This document shows positions 39,421-58,000 of a stretch of 64,000 bases of DNA, one piece after another. The position numbers were made by a program, and so were the translations under genes. Location: contig OZ037768.1 of assembly GCA_964035545.1 (NCBI GenBank), positions 5,736,741-5,800,740 on the forward strand, given 5' to 3'. Numbering within the stretch: the first letter of the stretch is position 1; the number at the start of each line of letters is the position of its first letter. The notes under the pieces are model-generated. The model had not been told where the DNA came from. It ran no database searches and saw nothing but the letters and a program-made list of their open reading frames with translations. Source of the DNA: Bugula neritina (taxonomy: Eukaryota > Animalia > Bryozoa).

Positions 39421-39659
39421 AACAGAAACATTAATAATAATGTTAATATATTATTATAATCTGCTCTAGATTGTTTATGCTGCTGTCATATGTTAATTTG
39501 CCACTGTTTAAGTTTAATTTTATCATTTACAAAATTTACATGTCATCTAAATTAATCATTCTTTCTACTCATGTTACATCTATAATGTTGCAAGAGTTGT
39601 ACTAACTTTTGGTAACTTTTGAATTTCTTCAATCAAACTGTGTTGCTTTTGTAGAAAAG

Positions 39660-42600
39660 ATGGCTACTGCAACTGATAAAATCTACAAATGTGGCCACTG
39701 TGGGACAACCAACGACTCTCTTGACAGTTTGAAGCAGCATATGCTTGAAGCCCATATGTCAAATCCTCCCAGTCAGCCTAATGCAGCAGCAGGGGACTCT
39801 CTTTCACTGCCTGTGGAAAAGCCTTCCACCAGCTCAGTTGTGAGTGTGCCCAAGCCTGTGCAGCCAACCAATCCCCCTTCTGAGCCGAAACCCGCTGGTA
39901 GATTTAAATGTGGCCATTGTGGTATAATTGTTGCAACTATGGATAAGCTGAAGTCTCACATGCTTACCACACACGTCAATGATCAGACGGGAGAACATGC
40001 TGGTCAGCAAGTAACACCTCCCGTAGCTAAAGGTAACTTCATTACTTTTCTTCTCTTTGCATTTATGTACAGGTTTTTATTATACTGTGCCTATTTTTCT
40101 AATACATGTATTTTGTATATTTCAACTGCAGATCTAGCTATTCTCTCAGTGTAAAGTTTTTTCTAAGAAGAGCTGCATCTATAATCAAAGTATGGATATT
40201 TTTGCCCAAAATAAATAATACTCCATGATCCAGTTTCCATTTTATTTTTTGTAGAAACGCCACCTGGTGGCAAGTCTATGGATGTGAATGATGATATGGA
40301 AGAAGGCGATCTAGGGCATGAAATACAAGCCAATAAAGTCGAATTAAATTTTAGTGTGAGTTTCTATTGTTTAACTAAATAGGTATGTGTTCTCCTAGTA
40401 GTCAGTGAGATAAATTATTTTACATTCATACACTGATAAGTTCCTCATAGGTTTAACACCAAGCCGTTTATCTTTGAGTTGAGTAAATCATAGGAGAGAC
40501 AACTCTTACTTTCAGGCACGAATAATTGTATTGAATACAAGATTCTTTTGCATTCACAAAGTGTGTTTATATTTTTTGCTTCTCAATTCAGGTGATGATC
40601 CCAGATTCTGAGCTGCATATTTTCCCTCGACATGTAGAGCCAGCTTTATATTTCACATGCAAGTACTGCGATTTCAAAAGTAAACAGTACAAGAGTGTGT
40701 CCAATCACGTCGCTGCGTGCCATCCGAAGAAGCTAGCTCCAGCGGTCCGAGCCCAACGGCAAGGTTTGTATGTTATAAGGTGTTGTCTATAGTTCAAAGT
40801 GAAAACATTAGCATGTCTAACTTTATGAGTTGTATACGGTAATTCTATTAACATTTTTATGTCATATTTCTTTTGGGTTTTCAACTTCAGTAATTTTGTT
40901 AGTTGTTCATGTGGGATTTATCCTCTTTGACTGAAAAGGCTGAGTGGCTTAGGTTTATGAAAGGTGATGGTTATTTTCAATCTTATTTTAGAGGAACTCA
41001 AAGGGTTGGACCTTTCTGAGTTAGAAGCTGTTTCGAATGAGAAATATGGCCCTGGAAGAATTCGAACTCGCGTGGTCAAACCTCTGCCATATCCCTGTGG
41101 ATACTGTAACTTGTATGTCTTATTTTGCTTTATTAGCTAGTTTTCTGTACACGCATTGTTGACTATAATAGGTTAATATTTTGGCTAGCTTCTACAGTGC
41201 CATGTATTTAATAGATCATTTGAGACTCAAGTTGATCAGAGTGTCCACCAGCGCTGCCATATTCCTGACAGCAAAGCTATGAGGTGTTGCTTTTGCTCTC
41301 GAGAAGCTCCCGAACATCGGCCCTGGAAGATGTTGTACAGACATATTGTTACAATGCATCCTGGGAATGTCACACCCAAACATCTTTGCAAGTTCTGCGG
41401 TAGGTTGATTTTCATTTTCAGGCCTTTATTTTATATTGAAATGTTTGACTTGTGTGCTATGGTTAGTAAGTTTATTAGAGTAAACTGATAGTCCTAATAG
41501 CAAACTTCACCCACCATATAGTATTAACATAGGGTTATCTTTCTGTTAAATAACTAATTACCCACATATTGATCACTTTTAACTTTAACGTATTTTATAT
41601 ATTAGCTGTCGTAATGACAATGCTGTTGGTGGCAATTTTTTATGCGTCACTGTTCCTGCTACTGACTGCTCATTATGCAATCATGTATAAAGTTGTATCT
41701 GCTATACAGGTGTTGCCTGTATGTTCCCTCATAACCTGAAGATTCACCTCAAAACTGAACATGGTATAGAGGAAGACCCGGCTGACGTTGGTGATGGTGT
41801 GACGTGCGAACACTGTCAGAAGACGTTCAAACACGCCAGCTACCTCAAGTATCACCTTGTAATCCGCCATGGAATTGGTACACCGGAAGAAAAGTGAGCA
41901 AGACTTTTGTGTTTTCCCTATCAACTATTTTAACTCCATTAGCTATTGGAATATTATTGAATTATAGACATTGTTGATTTTAGTAAACATGCTTGTGCTG
42001 TAGAGCGAAGATCACCGCTCAGAGCCAGAGAAAGAAGGAGCAGAAAATAGTAAATAAGCGGCACAAGCCAATGATGACGTGCAAGCTCTGTCCTTACCAG
42101 ACTAATGACCAGTACCGACTCAGAACTCACACTGAAGTCGTTCATCAGGGTGTCAAACGTCATAAGTAGGTGTTAAGGCTTCACTTATTGTAATGTTCAA
42201 TTGAGTTTATTTTCTCTTGCCTTTATTTGTTTCTATTTCTGTAGCATACAATAAACATGCTAGTCCTTCGTGGTGATGAAACTATTAAAGTTTATATTCT
42301 CTTAGCTTTATTTGTTTCCATTTCTTGAGCATGATAGTCCTTCATGGTGATGAAGCTATAGCTTTTGTTTATATTTGCTGTCAAAGTGTGTAGTCTGTAG
42401 TGGGTACAAATGTATGTTGTAGGTGTGGAGTATGCAACACAGCTTTCTCTGATTACTCCACTCTGAGACGTCACATGTGGAGACATAGAGATAGTAAACC
42501 CTACTCCTGTCAGTTCTGTGGCTTCACCTGTATTCAAAGTACCCAAATTAAATCTCACTACAAGAATAAACATGGGATGAGTCCAGCTGATGCTAAGAAA

Positions 42601-43506
42601 CTCATCAGGTGCAGTATAACGCGTAATATCAAATGTTCACTTTTTGCCTCCATGTCCTGATTGGATGGCAGGCTTGTAATTTCAAATTAATGTCAACAGA
42701 CGAATTTTTTGTCTAACTTGTTATATAATAGCTGCTCAAATACATTTGAGGGTAAAACTACCTCTTTCACTCTCTATAGTTTCTCTTATATTTAATATGG
42801 TGATTGAATTGGTGATGGGTACTCGTGCGCCTTAGTTGATGTTTCACCTTTTAGTGTCAATTAATTGCAGACATATCAATGGGCCCCGCCACAGCATCAC
42901 TGGTACTGAGTCTGCGCCCACCACCCAGCAGATCCAGGTTCAGCCAACACATGCTCAGCAAGTGGTCATAGCACAGCAACCTCAGCAGCACCAACAGCAG
43001 CAGCAGCAGGCTACGGTGATACACCCTCAACAGATGGTTCAGGTTCACCAACAGCAGGTGCTGCCTCCACAAGCGCATCAGGTGCACCAGGTGCCTGTCA
43101 GTGGACAGCAACACGGACATAGAACCTATACTGTGTTCAATGATGGCCATGGAATGGAATACACCGACATACAAGCTGTGAGTATACACCTCTTGTCTGT
43201 ATTTTTTACCTTAGCAACTGTAAATTTGTGTGTGTATCATAATTTGTTGCTTATTTGAATTTAAAATTATAGAGCAGTTGATTTGGCGTAAGAAATTTGT
43301 AAGTTGTCAGTCTAAACTGTAGAATATAGAAACACTTGATTTGTAAAAGTAGTTATTTTGACCCCTTGTTGATTCCCAATCATATGTAATACACAAATAA
43401 ATCATACTCTGGCAAGTTTCTCATGTTTGATATTGTTCTATTTCAGCTTGCGGATGCTGCCGAAGGATTACTTGCTGCCGAGCAAATTGTTATTGCCACG
43501 TCTTAA
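39660..43506 (+). CDS. C2H2 zinc-finger protein, paralog C (two N-terminal fingers, Gln-rich C-terminal region)
   Basis: Exons approx. 39660-40032, 40255-40355, 40592-40763, 40992-41112, 41215-41399, 41710-41893, 42004-42165, 42423-42608, 42871-43177, 43447-43506. MATATDKIYKCGHCG..; LRRHMWRHRDSKPYSCQFCGFTCIQSTQIKSHYKNKH. Ends LADAAEGLLAAEQIVIATS*. Confidence 0.9.
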
Positions 43507-45435
43507 ACCATTGGACTTTCATTTGTCACCCAAATGCTTTCAATTTTGCTTTCCAGCCTTGTGTAGTTTTGGTTACCACAATGTTAGTTCACCCTACATA
43601 TTCATGCTGGGTACTAAAATGATGTGATGTAGAAGTGTAAATAATATTTAAGCATTGCTTATGTTGATATATTTAGTATGATCCTCTTGCATACCTCTTC
43701 ATGTACATGATTGTTTCTTTTGTAGTTAGTTGTTTATTTACTATTTCTAATCATTTTACGAATTTGTTAAAAAGCATATGCATGAAATATCACTAGTGTG
43801 TTACGGTTAACAATAGTATGGAATTTTATTATGGGACTGTATTATGCACTTCTTCAATTTTACAAATGTTATGATTTAATGCAGATATACGTTTTGATAT
43901 GGAGGTGTTGAATTTTTAGTGTCTGATAATGCTAGCAAATGAAGTATTACTACAGTAGTGGCAGCCTGTGTAACTTATAATATAACAGCATATTAACCAC
44001 ATACTCGCTAGTGACTTCATTCATTTCACAGTAAATCTTCACAAATTTCTCTCTTTTGCTGCGCTGTAAAATCTTCATCACAGGTTAGGAGAGATAACCC
44101 CAGAACTGGTGTCAGGAATATGTTGCTGAGTAGAAGCTAGCATTGCATAACTCTTGTGTTTAGCTGCCATTGGAAGCTAACTAAAAACTTTCCAATACTG
44201 TATGAAAATGATTGTTTCAAATAATACATTTATGCTGAGAGCTAAAATATTTAGTGGGTCAATTTAAAATCAATGCCCAGTTGATAACATTGGGCCGCAA
44301 TTACTCTGGGAAAAACTAACTTGTTTGCTATAAGGTTTTCTCCATGCCATTGAATTATCACAAAATTATGTAGAAAGTGTAGCATTTAGTTTAATGCTAT
44401 TATGCATAATCGCAGGAAATATGTATTTTAAATTATAATTATCACTGTAGATCAGGCTATCAAAAATACTTGGTGTAATAGGATTCATACAGTAAGGCAG
44501 TTTCTTCAAAGCCTTACCCTATATAGCTGATGTATTCTCAGTTAGCACTTTAGTGCCTGCAGTCAATAGCTTGTCTTTTTGGGCTAACTAATGTAGCTAG
44601 TCAGGTTGTTAAAAATATATATTTTGTGCTACTGTCAATGGAATTATAATGTTTAAATGTATAGTATCATGCTACTTAGCTTTTGGCATTTCTAACATCT
44701 CCAGCCTTTTTTCTTTTGATATTTGGGACGAAATCATTGTTTACTGGTCAACCAATCGTGTAGGTTTTTGCACGTGCCAAAGTTTATATTGCGGAGGGTA
44801 GATTTTTTAGAAGCACTCAGTCTCAGTTGAACCTCAATGTTGAGCTTGGTAGACGCCATATACAAGCCATTTTTTAGAAGTTCCATCATCATTGTTTAAC
44901 CTGAATTACATGTTCTCGAAGTTGTTTAGGTATTGAAATTTTCAAATTTGTTAAGTGAGCTAAAAAATTACAACTTTTCTCTTACAGTCGGTGTAATATT
45001 TTTAATAAACTCAAGCCCGTTTAGTTTTACTAAAAGTAAAAGGAAAACAACCAAGTATCAGTATGAAGTATAAGTATTACTTAAACTATAAGTTTTAGCT
45101 GTAACCAATGCCAATGGGCAATAGCAATAGACTAAGGTATGCTCATAGTAATACTAATAATATTAGTAATATTAATACTATAACTATAAGTATAGCAACC
45201 ACAAGTACAAGTAAGAATGAACAGTTCCAAGTTTTTGTTACAAGTACAACTAGACCTAGTAGTAATACTACTACTACTAGAGCTGGTGAAGTACAAGTAA
45301 TACTAATAGTAACTTACTAACAGTTACTAATATTCAGTTACTAATAGTGATACTAATACAGTAATAGTAATACTAATAGGAATACTGAATAATACTAATA
45401 CTAATAGTAATAGTATTGCTATTAGTATTACTAAT

Positions 45436-45890
45436 ACTACAAGACTAGGCGTAAAACTATAAGTATAAGGCCACGTATCATTACTATTAGTATAAGTATA
45501 ACTATTACTATTAGTTTAAGTAAAACATCAACCCACTGTCAACACTCAACACAAACTTGTTCAAGGTGAGCTTGACAATGACGCTCACTTACAGCTACCA
45601 AATGAGTTAAACGTAAAGCAGTATGAGTATTTGTTAGCGAGTTAAACTTGATGTTACTAATAGTATTAGTAACATCAAGTTTAACTCGCTAACAAATACT
45701 CATACTGCTTTACGTTTAACTCATTTGGTAGCTGTAAGTGAGCGTCATTGTCAAGCTCACCTTGAACAAGTTTGTGTTGAGTGTTGACAGTGGGTTGATG
45801 TTTTACTTAAACTAATAGTAATAGTTATACTTATACTAATAGTAATGATACGTGGCCTTATACTTATAGTTTTATGCCTAGTCTTGTAGT
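45436..45890. repeat. 455-bp near-perfect palindrome (227-bp arms, 1-nt centre at 45663)
   Basis: actacaagactaggcgtaaaac...gatgttactaata-g-tattagtaacatc...gttttatgcctagtcttgtagt; one mismatch seen (45451 vs 45875). Confidence 0.97.
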
Positions 45891-46683
45891 TGCAATTTAA
45901 AGTTAAACATGCACTTAGGCTAATACATACAGGTGCAGTCAGAGTCAATATTTTTGTTGTACTAAGTCCAATGTTTTTATTTTTTAGGCCTAGGTTCATT
46001 ATCATTATTTTTATGATCATGAAATGGATATTCATATTGATATTGCTATTACTGTATTAGGTAGTATTAAGTTGAGCCTCAAACCATATCAGTAGATGGC
46101 TACTCATCAGTATCAGTATGACCTACTGTCCTTTGGCTATGGTTGTTTCTATTACTAATTATTAATAAAAATATTAAAATGTAATCATACAAACTGTCAT
46201 ACGAACTGTTTGAATTATTGTGAGAGATGATGATAATCAGTGCTAGTCAGACTCATGATGATAATCACTTCAAATAATAACCAGTAAACTGCTAAAGTTG
46301 TAAAAACGATTATCCAACAATTGATGGCACATTTAGCTATTCTTTGTAGTGCTATAAACCAAGTTTCAGTAAGTACCTGACTCTCCTCTATGTCGATGAG
46401 TGTTACTATTTGATATGATATATTATATTATACTTTTTTTCTTAAACTTCTTCAAGTAACTTAAATTATTAGTAGGTATGACTATTTGGTCTTTGGTAAA
46501 ATTCTAATCCGCAAAGTTTTAAAAAAGGGAAGTTTTATAACAAACTGATTACAGCTATAGTAGAAAAACTTTTGTTTAATAATATTTCAACTATTGTATG
46601 TTTGATGGCAAAATTAACAATAGGTTGGCTTATCAATAGTCGTGGAAATAGTAAATGGGATAAATTTGATTACAGTTTGGAAG

Positions 46684-49600
46684 ATGGATCAGAGCACAAA
46701 TGAAGCTACTTCATCACCAGCCGGTATGACTACTAGAAAGCGATCTAGAGCATCAATGCAGATAGCCCCATCTTCTACACCAGTAGTTAATACTGATGCC
46801 TCTGTTGCTGGCTCAATTGCAGCATCAACATCTAGTGTAAGAATCTTCTTTCAATATTTCAGAAATATTGTTTGAGGACTCAGGACATATGTATTCTACA
46901 ACTATGCTACACCACCAGCCACACAAATTAGCTGGAGTAGCTTTTATTTTACGTTTGTTGGTAAACTTTGCATAATATGTAGATTGATTGAGTTCTTAGA
47001 ATATTATCATTGGGTTTTGAGAGGCAAAAATAGTTAAATTTAGGTAATTTAATGTTATGAGTTTGCACAAATTTTGTTTTACTATAAATACATATTTCTA
47101 TAGGCTGAGGATGCAACACCCTTGTCTAATGTTGCCCATGCTCCTCGCAAAAAGGCAAGGCTAACACCCACCCTTACCCCTGTGGAGTCTACAGAGTCTG
47201 CTGCCGATACACCAGACACTAGTTTGATACCCGATGCCTCAAATATTTGTGAGGACGGCGTGAAGCCCACTCAACTAAAATATGAGCCAAAGCAAATAAT
47301 CTTGGGAACTCTGCACTGCTATGCACCTTCACACTTAGTACTGAAACCAGATGGTCTTTTGCTATCCATAAAAAGTAAGAGTATTTCAGCCAACTTTTTT
47401 TAATGAGCTGGTGAATTCATTTTAACTAAAGACAAGCCTTAAATAGTGAACTTCAATTTTAATTTCATAAAATATCTGCCAGTTATAAAATCTTAACACG
47501 TTGAACGCTTTTTGAATAATCTTCTGCAACTTTCTGTTAATATTTGGTTTGTGCTTTGTAGCACAGAAAAATGAGAGTGCGGAGGTGGTGCTCACGTTCC
47601 GCTCTATTAATGAATATTTGGTCTGTGACTCTCCAGCACTGCCACTTTTGATCATAAGAAGTTTTGGGTCATTTGGTGAGACGATAAGGGGTGCTCTCCC
47701 TTCATTAAAACGAACAGATGAGTTACTCAGTGCTGATGTGTTTGACCCTCTCTCTTCAGGTGAGTATCTAAATAGGCTATTCATCTTTGGCCATCATTGG
47801 CCTTCTATTACATATAGAGCTCGGACAGGTTTGGGTTTCTGTATTGTTATTAGCTGCCACAAGATTCTTTTCTAATGAAAAGTCTATTTGATTTTTCTGC
47901 ATCTCCGGTTCACAAGCTGTTTTTTTTATATTTCAACTTCTCTAACAGCTGTTTGGAAATTACTTTAGATAATATGGGTGATAGATTGTTATCTCCTTCT
48001 AGCAGTATTTCAAATTTATTTACAAAGTATCTCTAACTTCAGTTAGTTTGATGTCCCCCAAACCAAAATAATTTTGGTTAGAATAAGTATCTATTGACAA
48101 TAATAGCTGTCATTTGCATTTTGGATATAAAGCTCTATAATAGTTAAATTCTGGGCCCGTGTGATTATGTAGTAATAGAAATTGTAGGCTTTTGGTAAAA
48201 TTGTTTTAAATGAAGTAGTTTCTTTGTGACTCTAGTGTTATGCTATGTAACATGTAGCCATTGGTTATAATAACTATCATTCAACACATTTTACGTTGTT
48301 TTAGATAAATGCCACAGTTTCATCATGTTTGAAATGAAGTCAATTGGTGAACTGTGTGATCTCATCTCTAAGCTAATGCATTTCAATGCAAATGAAGAGT
48401 AAGTTGTATTAAATAAATACACTGCTGCTTTTTGCTCTATGTTCATTCGGTTTTGAAACTTTGCTGCAGTGTACCTAATTAGTTTTGATGTGTGTGTCAG
48501 CAGTTATCTTTACTTTCTCCGAGGTTTGGTTATATGATATTGTGCTAGATTATTTCGAAAAAGTTTTCACATGGTAGTGCTAGATAGTATGCAAATGCCA
48601 GAGACAATACCTTTTTATAGATTGTTGAATGCTGAGTAATTAAAACATGCTTTGCAAAAATTTCTCTTTTCCTATTGTATAATTTTTTGACACGTATTTA
48701 TCAACTTGTGGAGGTATACTTACTGACATGTACTTACCTATGAATACTACTTTATGGTTCAGTTTTTCAACTGGTCGCCTGCTGGTGCCTCGATCTATAT
48801 CATTAGAAGAAGCTAAGCGAAAACTTCACTCTACACAATGCGTCGTCTTCAAGTGGAAAGAAATGCAATTAGGCACGTGGAAGTCCAAGCCTTGTGCAGA
48901 TAGTACTGTTCACATGTCAGGCAGCAGGATTAAATTCAAAGCCAACAGTGAGTCTTAAATGTTGTAATGTGCTTTTGATGATTACTGGAAACTACTTTTC
49001 TGCTTACACTAATGTCATTGGGATGCATTATCAGTTTTGTTATCAAGTGTAAAGTATCAATACGTGTTGAACACCCAAGTTTTGGGTCTTGCTATAACAA
49101 GGATTAGTATTTCAATATATGTTGTGTTTAATTTTGTTCCATGTGTGCACAATGTACTTTAGTAGTAAATGTTACACTTTTGTATTTTTCATTTTCTAGC
49201 TGGGGTAGGAGCCGATGTAACTTTGGCAATTCATCTCAATGAAATCAACTCTCTCATGCTATGTGTGGCGCAGGCAAACCCGGTGTTATTTATACGAACT
49301 ACTGAGGCGTTTGGCTGGTCAGCCAGAGATAGGCTTGGCATTTCATCAACCTTTCAACAGGGCAAGGACTACTACAATCCAGACAGTCCAGGTATTGGCA
49401 TGCGTGGTGATTTTAAAGCTATAGTGAATGTGTAATTATTATGCATTACTTAAATTTATTTATCACATTTTTTATTTCTGTTGCAGAAACAAGATTCAAG
49501 TTTATAACATTTAAGCTAGAAAAACAGGGCGTTTCTCGAGAGTCTTGGCAGAACATGTACGAAGTTTCCGGGGAAAGATATTTTACATTTGATCACATCT

Positions 49601-51891
49601 CTTCACGTGTCGCCACAGAGATGCTGCACAAACTTATCTATCAACCAGTGCAGTGTACTTCTGTCAGAGTTGGTGCCAATGAATTTGATGAGATACGAGC
49701 TGTGACCATTCACTTTGACAGTTTATGTATTTGTGGTAAGTAGAAACGTGGTTTCTGGTGGTTTCTGGTATCGGATAGTAATGGTGCGGCGTAGTGGCCA
49801 TCAGCATTTGGACTTTTCGGAGAAATTTCTGGAATGTTTTGACTTTATATTCCAAAAACTTTTTTTGGCTAACTGAAATTTCTTTCAAAGAATGTTATTA
49901 GGAAGTTTTTCTACCCTGTCACTACCTTGTTTAATATTTTTTGATGGAACGTTTTCACTGTTAATTTATTATAATGCTTGGAAGGCTACACGATAAGTTT
50001 AATTATTTGAATAAACTTGGTAATAGCTGTAGTAGAATATAACCCTGATATATGTTATGTTGCATTGCCTTTGCCCAGGTTGCATGCTCGACTCTGTCGT
50101 TACCATGAATATCTGTATTGCTGACATCAAAGAGCTGAGCATATGCTTACATGACAAAGTGCCTGTGCTGTTTGTCAAGACCTCTACTGCTATAAGTGAC
50201 ACTTTAAAGAAAAACATGGCTTCCAGATCTGCGGATGTATTTTTTGATCCCAACTCTAAGGGTAGGCATATACCTCTATCAACCAACGCGTAGATCCTGG
50301 TCTTGAGCTCATTTCGGGTGGGGATTCCCTCAACTTAGCCATGTATTCAGGAAAAATGAACAATTTTTGGTACATCTATTAAGCATTCTGTTGTTGACCC
50401 TTGAAAATTGAAAAAGGCTTAATGTTCCAGTTATATTATACTTTCTTTGAAAGCAGCAATTTTATCAAGCAGTAATATACTGGTTTCACATGGATTTTTC
50501 ATCTTCACATTTGTATGATTTATACCGTTTTAGACATAAAAACACAGTACATAGTGATTGAGCTGAGCACCACGTCAAAGCCCTCCTTGAAGAAAATCCA
50601 TCATACGTTACAGACAGTGTTGAGTAACTTCAATGACCGGTGTAATGTGTATGTATTGTTTATTGAGCTCAAAATTTATTTGCCAAAGTTTTATTATTTG
50701 CATATTAGATGAACTTGCATAGAAATGCATGAGCCAATATGCTAGCCAATTTCTACAGTTACACATTTGGAATATGAAAATTTTAAGCTGTTGTGGAGAA
50801 AAAAAAGTTGTGTCCACAATGTGGACGCTGCGCATGAAAAGTTAACATTATGTACAAGTGAAATGTGAATAATATTGCAGGCCCAGGGAACAGAGGGCTA
50901 ATTTTGTGAAGTTATTGTCCAAACAAAAAGCTGAAGAACTGGTTGCCAAGATTAAGGAGCCACTTCCAGCGAAAGAGTGTGTGTGCGGTGAGCATAGTGT
51001 TATATTAAACTTGAATTTACTTAGAAAGTTACACAGCATATTTGTAATTTGGTTACATATATTTACATGTTACAACAATAGTCGCCATCTAATAATTGTA
51101 GGGAAACAACTACTGGTACATAGCTACATTGATATAATATATTATATAATATTTTTTTCCCATGAAAGGATTTTATATTAAAATAATTGAATTTTACATA
51201 TTGCATTTGTAGGACACATGTGTAAGGTTAATTTAAATATTTGTTTTATGCATAGAGTGAGTTCATGCTAAATGGATAAAAGTAAATCTGAGTTTGAAAA
51301 CAATTACTTAGGAACTATTAACTAGATTACATAAAAACCATTAATAATATAACTGTGGATTGGATTTTGTAGGCAAAAAAGAAGACATTAAACATAGGGA
51401 GGTATGTTTATTTATTTGAGATCTACAATAATGTTAACCCATGTTACAAATATTGCATGACTCTACTGTGTTACAAATATGCGGCTATGCAACTTCTTTT
51501 ATGCTTCTGCGAACTGCACTGAAATAAAATTCATTTACAAATTTTGGATCAACAGTTTTATAGCTTATAAAAGGCAGTTGTAATGTTGTATGATTTTGAT
51601 AATTTCTTCTAAGTTTATAAAAGTTGATAATTGAACTGGTGTTTTTTTTCACAGGAAGTCAAGCAATATGTACAATCGATGACCCAGAGACATGGCTGTA
51701 GCGCATTAGAAAAGATAGCATCAAGAGCTGTTGATTTACAAAAGAAGATCCTGTGCTCCGTGTGTCTTGATAAAGATTGTCAAATAGTGTTTACTTGTGG
51801 TCACATGATATGTGAAAGATGTGATCAGTCGTTACGTAAATGTCATATCTGCCGAATGAAAATATTGAAGAGGATTAAGATTTTTATGTGA
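46684..51891 (+). CDS. Uncharacterised ~667-aa protein: disordered basic N-terminus, three tandem SENP6/7-like PH-type repeats, C-terminal C3HC4 RING (putative E3 ligase)
   Basis: 12 exons with compatible phases: 46684-46836, 47104-47374, 47562-47759, 48305-48398, 48763-48947, 49200-49391, 49487-49735, 50079-50261, 50534-50639, 50881-50987, 51373-51401, 51655-51891 (2004 nt). RING: CSVCLDKDCQIVFTCGHMICERCDQSLRKCHICR. Repeats share P(V/L)L(F/I) and (F/Y)(D/N)PxS motifs. Confidence 0.8.
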
Positions 51892-52135
51892 GCAGGTTTT
51901 TTTACATGTATATATTCTTCTGTACTCTCTTTGTTTGCTACATGAATTGCATCCCTTATAAGCTTTGAGATTCACATCATGAGTTTATAACAACTTAACA
52001 TAAAAAAGTGCATCAAGACATTTATTAGTTTTTATTGTAGATTATTTTATTTCTTGTCAATAATTTAACTGCGCATAAAATATATAAAATAAAGTTTTAT
52101 TTTTTGTATAATAACATGTTGATAAATAAATGTAG

Positions 52136-53712
52136 TTAAAAAAACTTCACTCCATCATTTGCTCCACCAAGTGATATTAATTCAGCTTTTCCTGATGATT
52201 GCAATGTTTTTAAGGCACGTACTAATAGCCAGTTTTCTATTCCATGGAATTCTAAACAAAACCAAAGATTATTTATCCTATAGGCTGACATTTAAATAAT
52301 GGGTTATGAGAAACAAAAATTTAAAAGAACTGAAAATTGAACTCACCCTGTCCCTCACTGTCCTCCCCATTAGTTAACTCGTAAAGGGTGCAAACAGTAT
52401 TCATAAGTCCAAAGCTTTTAGCCTTGAAATACATGGAATGACAATTTTAACAAATAGAATATAAGTATAATAAATATTATTTGTGTAGTAATGCTAATTA
52501 TCCAATAACTTGTAAAATACTCACCCAGTCATAAATAAGTTTTCCCCATTCTTCAGGTGTTCGCCACATGATAATGCAGCTCTTTTTATTAGTATCTAAC
52601 CATTCCACATGTCCCTTCTTTGACAAAACATTAAGTATCCCTACTATGTGTTCTGTAGCTAGTTTTCCTGTTGAATAATTAAACCAGTTGCTACTAAAAA
52701 TTTATGGTACAATTTGGAAAATATCAAGTTTTGTGTCACAAACATTATGCAGCTACAGAGCAATACAAATTCAACATACTCTGTATTGATTTGTTGTTAA
52801 AAAGGGGACCAGCAGATATCTCTGCAACATCTAACTGATGGGTCTTGTAGTGTTTGCAATAGGAGAGTACGAGGGTGCACCAAGCTTCTTCCTGCTTTCT
52901 TCGGGTGTCAGCATTAGGCTGTAACCTGCAGAAAAGTTGTATACAATGTAACACTATCTAATTGAAAAATACTACAAATATATTTTAAATATAAGCATAA
53001 TGATCATGACAAACTTGAAGTAATAAAATTAAATATAAACATAATAATAATCATAATGATAATCATCAGCACAGTTAAACTTAATTAGTTAATGAGTTAT
53101 AGTAAAGTTATAGTATTACTTAATTTCATATTTCAACTTGGTCTTTTAGTTTTACTTACAGCTATCATTTCTTAGTCACTAACTTTGTGATGCTATCATA
53201 ATTATAATGATAGATGATAATCATTATGATTAATCAGTGACTTTGAATTTAGATGAATATAAACATTATAAATTATCATGAGTCATTATGATTATGGTTA
53301 CAACTATAACTATAACTGAGTATAAGTAAAAGTTAAAGTATAACATTAACTTAATGATTAACTATCATTATACTTTATAGCAATATGAATATGAATAATT
53401 TAATTCAATAACTATGATTATAATCATAATAACTATAGTGTCAATGAATAGATTATTAGTTATTACGATGATTTAAATTTCATATTAATATTTCATTATG
53501 ATAAAGTGATAATCATAATGATTATAATTATTTATAATGATAATCTTATTACAAGTTGAAATTATAATTATTTATAATATTAACAGTAAATACGTATTAA
53601 TATAATATAATGTATTCATAATTAAATATCAAAGTTAGACTTGAAGTTCTCACGTATAGAAAGGTGGAAAATCATGCTGCCATGGCCAAGGAAAACTATC
53701 GTCAGTAGTCAT
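52136..53712 (-). CDS. VPS25: ESCRT-II subunit VPS25, 179 aa
   Basis: Exons 53712-53654, 52925-52780, 52667-52525, 52422-52347, 52251-52136. FPWPWQHDFPPFYTLQPNADTRRKQ, WRTPEEWGKLIYDW, NTVCTLYELTNGED, terminal GVKFF*. Confidence 0.97.
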
Positions 53713-55090: not shown

Positions 55091-58000
55091 ATGTACAATT
55101 TACAGAAAAGAATTAAGGAACAAACTAATAAAAAGACTAGCTCAGAACCAACATGTGAAAATTCTACTGGTAGAGTCTCTGTTAGGGATCGTCTTCTCAT
55201 TCAAGGTGCAATATTAGACAATAAACATACCTTTTGCAACAAATAATTAGAGTTAGCATCATAGTATTGCCTTTTTAGCATGCTCTACTTGTCCACCATC
55301 TTGTAATGCTACTACAAGCCATCCTAGTTTTGGGTAGCCACATAAAATAATGTAGATATATCTTTTGTATGGCTGTTTAGGTTGAACCAATAGAGCTATG
55401 AACTTGCTTCAAGTGCTAATATTCAGTCTCTTATCAAATATAAAAAATTCTTAACTGTTTGTCTGCAAAGCTTCAGCTTCACCAGGATTTCTAAGCTTGT
55501 TACTTATATTTTATAACGTGGTTGTTATTGAATATTATTTTTATCCTATGATGTTTTATTACTTTGGAGTTGCCTTCCTTATAACATAAACCCCCTATAT
55601 AACTTTGTGCATAGGTTTATAATTCTGATAGGCTGCTGTGGTTGACAAAAATTGCATATATTAATATTGGTATTTAAAAGAAAAAAATACTGATAGATTG
55701 TGTTATGCTCTTTAAATCAGTCCTATGACTGGCAAATGTCAAATTTAATTAAATTATAACACTACTAATAACAAAAGTGAGTTCTCCAAGAGATGTAGTG
55801 TTTCCTGTTTTAGAAGTCAATGAAGTGCCAGATCACCTTCCTAAAGGATGTAATATTATATTTCCTAATCCTGATAGACTCCATGAAATTCTTCTCCGTA
55901 TCAATCCCAACTCAGGTTATTGGAAAGGTGGCACGTTTGAGTTTGAAATTTCGGTGCCCTTGGAATACAATATTATGGTAACTAACCATCAGTCTTGCGT
56001 CAGAAATATATTTCAGTTTATTTTTTGGACACATTATAATGTGCTCCTGGAAGAGTATATAATGCCTGTGACTGAAATGAAACTACCTCTGCACATGTAA
56101 CAAACTACTTATATCCACATGATTTATTTATTGATAGAGTGTTATTGACTTGAACAAATAAACAATTAATAAATCAGATAATCATCTAAAGCTCTGTTGA
56201 TTGACTGCATAATATTGATAACGTATTTAGTTTTTTTTTGCAATGCAAGTATGGCTTATATCTCCATTAATCTGTTGGGTATTTTACGAACTCTTGTTAC
56301 AGCCCCCATCAGTCAAATGCAAGACCAAGATTTGGCACCCCAACATTGACATCAATGGAGTTGTCTGCCTTAGTATATTGAGAAGCAGATCTCTGGACCC
56401 CACGGGCTGGGCACCTACAAGAACTCTAAAAGACGTTATTTGGGGAATCTGCGCTCTATTTGGTGTAAGTTTTACTTTAATCAACACCCTATGGCATACT
56501 TAAAAAGTAAGGCTATAAAAGTCTAAAGCAGGTCTGTTCAACAGGCGACCCCAAGGTCGGATGTGGCCCTTAGCCTACATTTATGTAGCCCTCAAAGGCA
56601 TAACAAATAAAATTATTTTGCACACATATATGAATTAGAGTGAAAAACCACCTTTTAAATGCCTTATTTATATACATGCTACAAAACATGCAACCTGCAG
56701 TATTTATTGGGACTTCATTGTTTAATGACTTATAGGAATTTGGAATAAAGTGATTTGAAAAATACTCAACTTGGGGCCCCAGCTCAAGCTAAAGTTTACA
56801 ATATATCCTTTGCCACCAGAATATTTCTTTTCAGTGGCCCTTGCTCTGAAAAGGTTGGACACCCCTGGTCCAAAACTATTTTAAATTTTGATGTCAACTA
56901 GTTAGTATTTTCTTCAATGAAGATCAGCTATTTAAATCTTATGAAAATGGGTAACACCTAGTTGCTTGCTTTATATACAAAAACTTTTTCCAATATCACT
57001 GTAATTTATTTCTTTCTTTAATTTATCATGGTTTTGTGAAGGTATTACAAATTTGGTTCATCAAGCATTGGTTATCATCTTATTTGAAAGAAATGCAAAG
57101 CAATCATAGCCTGACAGACGTTTGGATGTCAAAATAATATTTGAACCATATCTAAATCTTATTACTATAAATGAAAGGAATTTGAGGAGAATTAACAAAA
57201 AATGCTAAAATGTATAACAACTATGACTTTTATGGATGAAACCTAGTCAAGTTTTGCTAGATGTTGCATTGCATTTAAATAGTTTTTTTGTGAATGGTAC
57301 CGAGTGCAATGTACAATCATAGTCTTGCACAATGTCACTGTAGTTCATTAAAACCAAACACTGGCTCCACCAGCTGTTTCCTAATAGAAAGACTATTACT
57401 AAGCCACATGTTGATATTTATAGTGAGAGAATAGTTAACTAAAATTTGAAATAAAGCATTGCATTTCATTTGTCAGATTTTGAACTAAAGCTAAAATATA
57501 TCCAAGCAATGTTTAATTGAACTCCATTTAATCAACCGAAAAAGTCAAGATCCCACTGTACTTTGAAATTTGTGTCAAAAACATATAATTTTAACATTTT
57601 TTATTCCTGGTGCCAACTGACACAAGTCTCTGTAAGAACATATTTTTGTTCCAGGTGTAATACACAAATGGAATGCACTACAGAGCGTAGTGACTTGACA
57701 TAATGTATGTTATTCTTGGATAAAAGAGGAAGAATATTAATATAGTTTTTTTCTCAATTAAGGTCATGTCCTAATTAATTGCCACAATGGCATTAGATAG
57801 TTTAATTAAACAATACATTACTTTTGGTTTATTTTGATTACTTTAGATTTACTTGCTCTGCCATTGACTAGTTCTTTTTCAGCACATTTGTAAATAGTTT
57901 AATTAGTACGTCTGGTTTTACAGGATCTCCTTAACTTTGACGATCCACTAAACGTGGAAGCGGCAGACCTTTATTTGAAAGACAAAGTGAGTGGCAATAA

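Follow-up and report, generated by a model that had tools for sequence, protein, structure and literature searches.

A gene joining three SENP6/7-type PH-like repeats to a C-terminal Mind-bomb/IAP-type RING finger

Introduction

What is the role of a protein in which a domain of SUMO proteases recurs three times ahead of a RING finger? The question is raised by a gene in the window, by which we mean the whole stretch of 64,000 nucleotides of Bugula neritina DNA analysed here. The preliminary description of this gene had proposed an in-frame model of 12 exons, encoding two basic NLS-like motifs, three repeats of ~150 aa akin to the PH-like domain of SENP6/7 and a terminal RING of Mind bomb type, with neither an Ulp1/C48 protease domain nor a clear array of SIMs. 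These proposals stand up well to the searches, RNA contigs and structure predictions presented below.

Results

Gene model and transcription

Twelve coding exons at 46684–51891 on the forward strand join into one open frame, with an AG acceptor and a GT donor at every intron. The joined exons encode 670 aa (667 aa with an alternative donor at 50639), which run from a disordered basic N-terminus through three repeats of ~150 aa and a helical linker to a C-terminal RING. The two basic motifs, TRKRSR (residues 17–22; 46732–46749, exon 1) and PRKKARL (residues 65–71; 47143–47163, exon 2), and the strings quoted earlier from repeat 3 can all be located in the translated exons; the D of 'NSKDIKTQY' in repeat 3 comes from a codon divided between exons 8 and 9. 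An additional non-coding 5' exon, ending at 44929 and spliced to 46676, brings the RING-PH repeat gene to 13 exons. It is seen in RNA contigs as 66–80 loose letters ahead of 46674, which match 44898–44927 exactly, with a GT donor at 44930. The exons are as follows.

44850..44929, forward strand: non-coding 5' exon; 5' end approximate; joined to acceptor 46675/46676
46676..46836, forward strand: exon 1; ATG at 46684; Ser/Thr/Ala-rich, with TRKRSR; RNA joint 46836>47104
47104..47374, forward strand: exon 2; disordered, with PRKKARL; first strands of repeat 1 from ~47293; RNA joints
47562..47759, forward strand: exon 3; repeat 1 core with strands 5–7, helix 1 and FDPxS loop; phase-1 introns on both sides; RNA joints
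48305..48398, forward strand: exon 4; later part of repeat 1; RNA joints 47759>48305 and 48398>48763
48763..48947, forward strand: exon 5; last helix of repeat 1 (to ~48826), then first strands of repeat 2; RNA joints
49200..49391, forward strand: exon 6; repeat 2 core; phase-1 introns on both sides; RNA joints
49487..49735, forward strand: exon 7; remainder of repeat 2 (to ~49638), then first strands of repeat 3 (VQCTSVRVGANEF...); frame, profile and RNA joints
50079..50261, forward strand: exon 8; repeat 3 core; phase-1 introns on both sides; RNA joints
50534..50648, forward strand: exon 9; later part of repeat 3 (IKTQYIVIEL...); RNA donor 50648, joint 50648>50881/2
50881..50987, forward strand: exon 10; last helix of repeat 3 (to ~50953) and start of linker; frame, profile and RNA joints
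51373..51401, forward strand: exon 11; 29-nt linker exon; in RNA contigs, 28 letters of it separate joint sides 50986 and 51653
51655..51891, forward strand: exon 12; pre-RING helix, RING (Cys/His ligands 51754–51852), linchpin Arg, tail ...RIKIFM, stop

RNA-seq contigs from three studies, spliced at the predicted sites, connect all of these exons, among them exon 11 (29 nt) and the RING exon; the contigs derive from runs taken as RNA by guess from their records, and from a strain ~3–7% different from the window. A single spliced contig of 2860 nt (runs X2 and X3) has joints at every predicted junction, with the donor at 50648, and spans the region from the 5' UTR exon to the 3' UTR, the RING exon included; the same joints are present in two contigs of run X8 and in pieces from run X1. 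A separate transcript for the RING exon, which had been considered earlier, is thus contradicted by the presence of that exon and the repeats on one spliced contig. The contigs differ from the window at 83 positions in all, and of the 40 differences listed, 17 synonymous and 3 conservative replacement changes fall in the folded repeats, and 9 synonymous changes and 11 replacements in the disordered N-terminus. Purifying selection acts on the folded repeats.

The repeats and the PH-like domain of SENP6/7

The core exons 3, 6 and 8, each situated between phase-1 introns, align at ~28% identity and have motifs in common; the three repeats are genuine. In the whole genome the repeat core is found only in these exons and in one exon upstream of the C48 domain of the SENP6/7 orthologue, and own-genome searches find no retrocopy of the repeats. 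That orthologue, with a split C48 domain, is at C6, ~7.895–7.905 Mb, and the fourth copy lies 3–7 kb upstream of its C48 exons, on the same strand and with the intron phases of the repeats. This paralogue is found at an E-value of 2e-8 in one search and 6e-18 in another, exon 6 being the best of the three core exons against it. Identity between the repeats and the SENP6/7 copy is only ~25–35%. The E-values of exon 3 in own-genome searches are 1.2e-24 and 3.5e-11.

An independent profile, built exclusively from copies of other organisms and including a tick 'sentrin-specific protease 6-like' protein, matches exon 8 at 3.5e-11, exon 6 at 1.6e-10 and exon 3 at 6e-5. The flanking exons of each repeat match this profile weakly but in the correct order; residues 64–89 of exon 2 are collinear with profile positions 2–28, and residues 33–59 of exon 5 with positions 2–27, both as weak matches. 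The domain occurs together with PF02902 in P0022, P0028, P0029 and P0035–P0039, one of which is named 'sentrin-specific protease 6-like' by NCBI. Given the genomic paralogue ahead of C48, the independent profile, the co-occurrence with PF02902 and the PH-like model described below, the three repeats are homologous to the PH-like domain lying N-terminal to C48 in the SENP6/7 (Ulp2-class) SUMO proteases, as the preliminary description had supposed.

Each of the exon fragments obtained from other samples corresponds to one repeat in particular: exon 6 for P0006 and P0010 (76% and 57% identity), exon 8 for P0008 (80%), and exon 3 for P0011, P0014, P0015 and P0019 (44–60%). The triplication therefore predates those species. 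Exons 2–10 have no Pfam matches, and for PH_ULP (PF25352) and PH_35 (PF25424) there is no match in the window exons, nor in 32 alignment rows at E up to 10. The animal SENP6/7 PH-like domain has no Pfam sequence model.

Predicted fold of the domain

An AlphaFold2 model was made on an arthropod homologue (P0022:12-168), not on the repeats of this gene themselves. The model (pLDDT 91.8, pTM 0.87) has seven strands followed by a helix and an extension. With VIA-align, the top 50 matches are almost all PH-like (Z 5.5–9.1), led by chromatin- and chaperone-type PH folds (a SYCP2-like protein, SSRP1, Rtt106 and Spt16) and also including the GLUE domains of Vps36/EAP45; Foldseek alone gives weak matches, the best at E 6e-3. 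As modelled, the domain belongs to the PH superfold, with a seven-stranded beta sandwich and a helix cap. The top match in the Atlas is a chordate 'Sentrin-specific protease 6' cluster (TM 0.76 over 145 residues), followed by fungal and plant Ulp proteases with the Pfam domains PH_35 and PH_ULP. The suggested kinship with chordate SENP6 is thus purely a structural match to the model, and the apparent relation to the plant and fungal PH_ULP and PH_35 families is likewise structural only.

The RING finger

The RING encoded by exon 12 has eight zinc ligands in the spacing C-x2-C-x10-CGH-x2-C-x2-C-x6-C-x2-C, with all Cys and His positions as reported earlier, and matches zf-C3HC4_3 (PF13920) at 33.3 bits against a cut-off of 27 (E 4e-8). 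Sequence matches in the PDB include cIAP2, cIAP1 and BIRC7 at E ~2e-10 and RING3 of MIB1 at 4.8e-9, in alignments that span the '...CxICR...' linchpin and the '...F' tail; the tail ...CHICRMKILKRIKIFM is aligned to ...CPICRSTIKGTVRTF of cIAP2 and ...CPICRAPVRSRVRTFL of BIRC7. The last Cys is followed immediately by the linchpin Arg, and the residue adjacent to the C-terminus is aromatic; these are the ubiquitin-priming features of dimeric RINGs. Within the same genome, the closest RINGs belong to two Mind bomb genes and are the terminal ones; the better of the two has 44% identity without gaps and identical Cys/His spacing, in agreement with the Mind bomb type proposed at the outset; IAP RINGs score about equally by sequence, but two one-residue gaps are needed. 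Judged by its sequence, the C-terminal RING is a complete Mind-bomb/IAP-type finger.

Prediction of a RING homodimer gives a score of 0.37, compared with 0.00 for the best control, although this score may stem from the model's memory of solved IAP dimers. Among proteins of solved structure, 0.37 is attained by 21 of 30 that form pairs of one chain and by none of 23 that are single chains; for eukaryotes the figure is 17 of 29, but just one of seven when there is no older solved relative. At least 90% of contacts agree between runs, the pLDDT of the partner is at least 76, and the predicted interface comprises the pre-RING helix, residues 45–51 and the tail (72–78).

Absent domains and taxonomic range

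A search for PF02902 finds no C48 domain in the window or its surroundings, as had been claimed, and a genome-wide search for MIB_HERC2 (PF06701) has no match on C4 near 5.78 Mb. A regular-expression scan detects hydrophobic SIM cores only in strands of the folded repeats, and none in exon 1 or the disordered portion of exon 2, consistent with the earlier view that there is no clear SIM array.

Among the proteins found there is no RING-bearing relative of the repeat protein, and none of the annotated ones combines three PH-like repeats with a RING, in line with the earlier remark that no described protein is known to have such an architecture. In arthropods the same domain occurs in multi-copy proteins that lack a RING, with three copies in Ixodes and six in Amblyomma, and others in krill, wasps and thrips. 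This distribution shows that separation of the domain from the protease has taken place several times, in ticks, insects, krill and the lineage of the RING-PH repeat gene, which itself appears to be restricted to one invertebrate lineage.

Discussion

We propose, with a probability of roughly 0.6, that the gene encodes a dimeric RING-type ubiquitin E3 of ~670 residues that recognises its targets through SENP6/7-derived modules. In this model the RING and the preceding helix would dimerise in the manner of IAP and MIB RINGs, and the dimer would recruit E2~ubiquitin, where the ubiquitin on one protomer would be primed by the tail Phe of the other. The three PH-like modules would constitute the recognition part and bring the ligase to a protein ligand of the SENP6/7-type PH-like domain, and the two basic motifs of the disordered N-terminus would send the protein to the nucleus. 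The gene may have arisen in this animal's lineage from an old triplication of a SENP6/7-type PH-like domain together with a Mind-bomb-type terminal RING exon. We infer the E3 activity, the targets, the nuclear localisation and any tie to SUMO of the RING-PH protein. As no description of the function of the SENP6/7 PH-like domain was found in the literature searched, a ligand in common with SENP6/7 is a guess, and specificity may have changed given the modest identity of the repeats to the SENP6/7 copy.

A different role for the modules would be that of a decoy or antagonist of SENP6/7, in which they compete for docking sites or bind the protease, and the RING mainly controls turnover of the decoy or of SENP6/7 and not that of docked partners. 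The domain is common to exactly one other gene of the genome, the SENP6/7 orthologue, and the independently made RING-less proteins of arthropods show that an array is useful without a catalytic partner, both of which would suit such a role. However, the RING retains all features required for catalysis, the linchpin Arg and the aromatic residue of the tail among them, and the low identity to the SENP6/7 copy speaks against strict competition for one site, so that we regard antagonism as unlikely.

It is also conceivable that the protein is a SIM-independent SUMO-targeted ligase, whose PH-like modules read SUMO or poly-SUMO and would help to select chains in SENP6/7. Otherwise the domain is specific to the Ulp2/SENP6/7 class of poly-SUMO proteases, over a range that extends from fungi and plants to chordates, ubiquitin-binding domains of the PH superfold exist (the Vps36/EAP45 GLUE domain is among the structural matches), and several reader modules in tandem with a dimeric RING bearing a C-terminal aromatic residue would parallel the layout of RNF4. 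Against this, the top structural matches are PH folds of the chromatin and chaperone type, and the SENP6/7 paralogue of the same genome has a SIM-like stretch of its own (EVYVISSSDDDSDEV), so that the protease would not need the PH-like domain for SUMO. We consider such SUMO reading rather improbable, and about equally so the wider proposition that the PH-like domain of Ulp2/SENP6/7 is an unrecognised reader of SUMO, poly-SUMO or a SUMO-dependent chromatin mark, with the present gene as a SIM-less SUMO-targeted ligase.

That the model is a chimera of a repeat-protein gene and an unrelated RING exon, or a decaying pseudogene, is very improbable: exon 11 has just 29 nt, the final two introns are AT-rich and long compared with the exons on either side, and the arthropod relatives are without a RING, but single spliced contigs from several runs and studies extend from the 5' UTR exon via exon 12 into the 3' UTR, the frame is open throughout and synonymous changes prevail in the repeats.

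If the gene encodes a ubiquitin ligase guided by SENP6/7-derived modules, as we favour, its interest lies in the module, which is here triplicated and coupled to a putative ubiquitin-ligase output. A fusion of this kind usually marks a module as an autonomous recognition unit. The ligands of the three repeats would be candidate docking partners for SENP6/7, and the gene suggests a possible direct hand-over between deSUMOylation and ubiquitination; were the modules to read SUMO, a role for the uncharacterised domain in human SENP6/7 would be revealed. As the gene is apparently limited to one invertebrate lineage, its broader weight depends on the ligand of the domain.

Comparison with known systems

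The protein has in common with SENP6/SENP7 a PH-like domain of ~140 residues, which there lies just N-terminal of C48; this arrangement is seen in the orthologue of this genome, where the intron phases around the core exon are those of the repeats, and in the 'sentrin-specific protease 6-like' proteins of ticks, as well as in chordate SENP6 on structural grounds. Unlike SENP6/7, the present protein has no C48, no N-terminal zinc ribbon and no SIM-like stretch, and the domain is present three times, not once, ahead of a terminal RING.

With the terminal RING of Mind bomb (MIB1/MIB2) it has in common the Cys/His spacing, the KRIxxF tail and the place at the extreme C-terminus after a helix, although MIB_HERC2, ZZ and ankyrin domains are missing and there is one RING in place of two or three. 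The RINGs of cIAP1/2, BIRC7 and XIAP are the best sequence matches among solved structures, and IAP-type RINGs have the same pre-RING helix, linchpin Arg and penultimate aromatic residue; unlike IAPs, the protein lacks BIR, CARD and UBA domains, and both RING loops are one residue shorter. STUbLs of the RNF4 type follow a similar logic, in which several SUMO-pathway modules precede a dimeric RING that lies at the C-terminus and has an aromatic residue in its tail, whereas here there is no SIM cluster and any link to SUMO would go via putative PH-like readers.

Finally, proteins of Ixodes ricinus (A0A131XRX8), Amblyomma americanum (LOC144099460), Trichogramma, Aphidius, Thrips and krill have two to six tandem copies and no protease; they are annotated as uncharacterised and all lack a RING. 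The identity of ~65% between the tick copies and the tick SENP domain suggests that their duplications are recent and took place independently; unlike these, the repeats described here are old and divergent.

Gene model and transcript

The DNA studied here lies at G000:C4:5736741-5800740 (contig C4 of the source genome G000, an assembly of 216 Mb) and has the composition of AT-rich eukaryotic DNA, with about 33% GC. Twelve coding exons were placed within 46400-52200, with AG acceptors and GT donors throughout, and when joined they form a single open frame ending in TGA at 51889-51891. The product has 670 aa if exon 9 uses the donor at 50648 and 667 aa if it uses that at 50639. This join served for local frame arithmetic and codon classification, searches and modelling being done exon by exon. 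The strings quoted in the preliminary description (TRKRSR, PRKKARL and the repeat-3 peptides, which run across a split codon) are all found in the exons, as is the RING spacing C-x2-C-x10-CGH-x2-C-x2-C-x6-C-x2-C. The features of the locus are as follows.

39609-43258 (+), upstream neighbour with C2H2 zinc-finger exons and an extended Gln-rich region, ending short of the RING gene's 5' exon
44898-44927, RNA-matched part of an extra non-coding first exon of the RING gene
44911-46710, uORF of 15 codons that begins in the non-coding first exon with the ATG at 44911; once spliced it overlaps the main ATG out of frame
46684-51891 (+), RING gene: main ATG at 46684 (A at -3, G at +4); exons 3, 6 and 8 form the centres of repeats 1, 2 and 3, and exon 12 is the RING exon
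55777-56503 (+), downstream neighbour at a distance of about 4 kb, with exons encoding a NEDD8-conjugating E2 like UBE2F/UBE2M, whose position beside a RING gene is probably coincidence

Thirteen sequencing runs contain about one-tenth of the sampled words of the stretch, a pattern consistent with spliced RNA, and runs X1, X2, X3 and X8, from four studies, were compared with 46600-52000. A 2860-nt contig, identical in X2 and X3, has GT..AG joints at all predicted junctions, an exon 11 of 28 letters between the joint sides and about 660 nt of 3' UTR beyond exon 12; it uses the exon-9 donor at 50648, so that the expressed form is the 670-aa one. The same joints are seen in two contigs from X8 and in pieces from X1. 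There is no retrocopy of the gene in the genome, where the domain matches are the three core exons and one paralogous exon, and the matching contigs therefore derive from spliced RNA. They place the RING exon on the same transcript as the repeats, as had been proposed, and a separate transcript for the RING is thereby excluded. The 66-80 RNA-contig letters preceding 46674 give an exact match to 44898-44927, with GT next in the genome, which defines the non-coding first exon.

Over 46600-52000 the RNA contigs, whose organism label is that of the DNA, diverge from it by about 3-7%, with transitions prevailing; another strain, or else a cryptic sibling species, is the probable source of the RNA.

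Homology of the repeats to the SENP6/7 PH-like domain

The three core exons share about 28% mutual identity and are all bounded by phase-1 introns. A profile built from them detects one further locus in the genome (E 2e-8, or 6e-18 with a larger profile), an exon on contig C6 with the same intron phases at both ends. Upstream of this exon are a zinc-ribbon exon and a SIM-like stretch EVYVISSSDDDSDEV, and 3-7 kb downstream on the same strand are C48 peptidase exons (PF02902) with the motif order and long insertion typical of SENP6/7, so the domain occurs in just one other gene of this genome, the SENP6/7 orthologue. Its features are these.

G000:C6:7897598-7897744 (+), paralogous PH-like core exon
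G000:C6:7897717-7898097 (1620-2000 of L004, the SENP6/7 paralogue locus), a 45-bp unit in about 8 tandem copies, each made up of the terminal codons of the PH-like core exon plus its GTAAGT donor (...NPYYTPDSTSK / gtaagt...)
G000:C6:7905043-7905447 (+), long, possibly coding open frame of Ser/Gly/Thr low complexity, which immediately follows the last C48 exon

As the 45-bp unit is a multiple of three, splicing at any of the repeated donors would stay in frame, each unit contributing 15 more residues.

An exhaustive profile search of 1.84 billion representatives returned just 25 matches, among them P0022, with the domain at 18-160 and Peptidase_C48 at 248-344, and multi-copy proteins without any other domain. 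Word-based searches brought up tick proteins combining the domain with PF02902, one of which is named 'sentrin-specific protease 6-like' (Ornithodoros turicata). In the reverse direction, a 138-position profile made exclusively of foreign full-length copies finds exon 8 (E 3.5e-11), exon 6 (E 1.6e-10) and exon 3 (E 6e-5), with weak matches to the flanking exons in the correct order. Pfam recognizes none of the 32 domain copies in our alignment, PH_ULP and PH_35 included, and exon by exon its sole match in the gene is the RING exon; a PDB sequence search with the domain profile gave no real match, and our literature search turned up no relevant paper on a PH or PH-like domain in SENP6, SENP7 or Ulp2.

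Predicted fold of the repeats

An AlphaFold2 model of a homologue of the repeats (P0022:12-168, with the 32-row alignment; pLDDT 91.8, pTM 0.87) has seven strands and a helix, followed by a strand-helix-strand-helix extension. Foldseek against the PDB gave weak PH-like matches only. The VIA-align list for the model belongs almost wholly to the PH superfold, with Z up to 9.1, and includes a SYCP2-like protein, the RDR2 N-terminus, SSRP1, Rtt106, Spt16M, pICln, REC114 and USP37. In the Atlas shape search the first match is a chordate 'Sentrin-specific protease 6' cluster (TM 0.76 over 145 aligned residues, rmsd 2.9 Å), followed by fungal and plant Ulp proteases, some with Pfam PH_35 or PH_ULP; the Atlas search by features gave scores of 0.81, which serve as leads only. 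A link between the repeats and chordate SENP6 is thus supported at the level of predicted structure. The suggestion that this type of domain precedes the SENP6/7 catalytic domain is borne out by homology in invertebrates and by structure in chordates.

Selection and age of the triplication

Substitution classes were assigned to 40 of the 83 differences between RNA and window. Among these 40, codons 106-381, which cover the folded repeats, have 17 synonymous changes and 3 conservative replacements, and in codons 1-105, the disordered N-terminus, replacements (11) outnumber synonymous changes (9). Fragments of ORFs in other samples match exon 6 (P0006, 76% identity; P0010, 57%), exon 8 (P0008, 80%) and exon 3 (P0011, P0014, P0015 and P0019, 44-60%). 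Since each fragment pairs with one particular repeat, the triplication predates those species and every repeat has been retained. The other-sample contigs with orthologous exons are 0.7-2.8 kb long, too short for RING linkage.

Relatives

None of the 25 exhaustive-profile matches bears a RING (the profile having only 61 positions), and the word-based searches, limited in length and words and dominated by ticks or thrips, yielded neither a RING fusion nor a vertebrate protein. This is weak evidence, bryozoan proteomes being apparently missing from the collections. Our literature search found no paper describing the PH-like domain or its combination in repeats with a RING, and within this limited scope the architecture appears as new as the preliminary description held. 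The multi-copy relatives that could be named are without exception uncharacterised arthropod proteins (Ixodes, Amblyomma, Trichogramma, Aphidius, Thrips and krill). Those of ticks share about 65% identity with the SENP domain of ticks, and this points to separate and recent duplications. In Amblyomma americanum a gene with six tandem PH-like copies and a tick SENP-like gene (P0001/P0036; LOC144099460, LOC144099462) share a 185-Mb record, their locus numbers differing by two, an arrangement suggesting that the stand-alone array arose recently and in tandem from the protease gene.

RING finger and working model

Exon 12 matches Pfam zf-C3HC4_3 with 33.3 bits (cut-off 27), and its best solved-structure matches are cIAP2, cIAP1 and BIRC7 (E ~2e-10), MIB1 RING3 (4.8e-9) and XIAP. 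In dimers of the RNF4/BIRC7 type, an Arg that follows the last Cys and an aromatic residue next to the C-terminus prime the donor ubiquitin, and the exon-12 RING retains both. A predicted exon-12 homodimer scores 0.37 against 0.00 for the best control, a score reached by 21 of 30 solved one-chain pairs and by none of the 23 solved single chains, although IAP dimers have been solved and the pass may reflect the model's memory. At least 90% of contacts are shared between its runs, with pLDDT of at least 76, and the interface is formed by the pre-RING helix and the tail; we read the prediction as likeness rather than as binding.

The evidence shows that the gene is expressed and that its conserved product combines three SENP6/7-type PH-like modules with a complete RING of the MIB/IAP type. 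The protein would most likely act as a dimeric RING E3, directed to the nucleus by its two basic motifs; recognition would fall to the PH-like modules, which may dock on ligands of the same class as SENP6/7 does. That it is instead a decoy or regulator of SENP6/7 seems to us unlikely, and we consider it quite improbable that the modules read SUMO itself, which would make the protein a SIM-less STUbL. A chimeric model or a pseudogene is ruled out for practical purposes by the spliced RNA contigs and the substitution pattern.

Comparison with known systems

The absence of a C48 domain, stated in the preliminary description, is upheld by the Pfam exon scan and a PF02902 search, and membership of the SENP6/7 protease family is rejected. 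Membership of the Mind bomb family is rejected likewise, as no MIB_HERC2 or ankyrin domains are found in the exons, and so is that of the RNF4/SIM-type STUbLs, as the disordered N-terminus has no SIM-like core. We class it as a RING E3 whose recognition module had not previously been described in that role. As to the RING itself, alignment of IAP RINGs with exon 12 requires two one-residue gaps, whereas its best paralogue in the genome aligns gap-free.

C6:11394205-11394363 (-), exon downstream of ankyrin and MIB_HERC2 exons and therefore encoding a Mind bomb terminal RING

This RING is 44% identical to exon 12, with identical spacing and the same KRIxxF ending, and the second-best RING paralogue in the genome adjoins MIB_HERC2 exons too, so that the Mind-bomb type assigned to the RING at the outset agrees with both of its best paralogues there.
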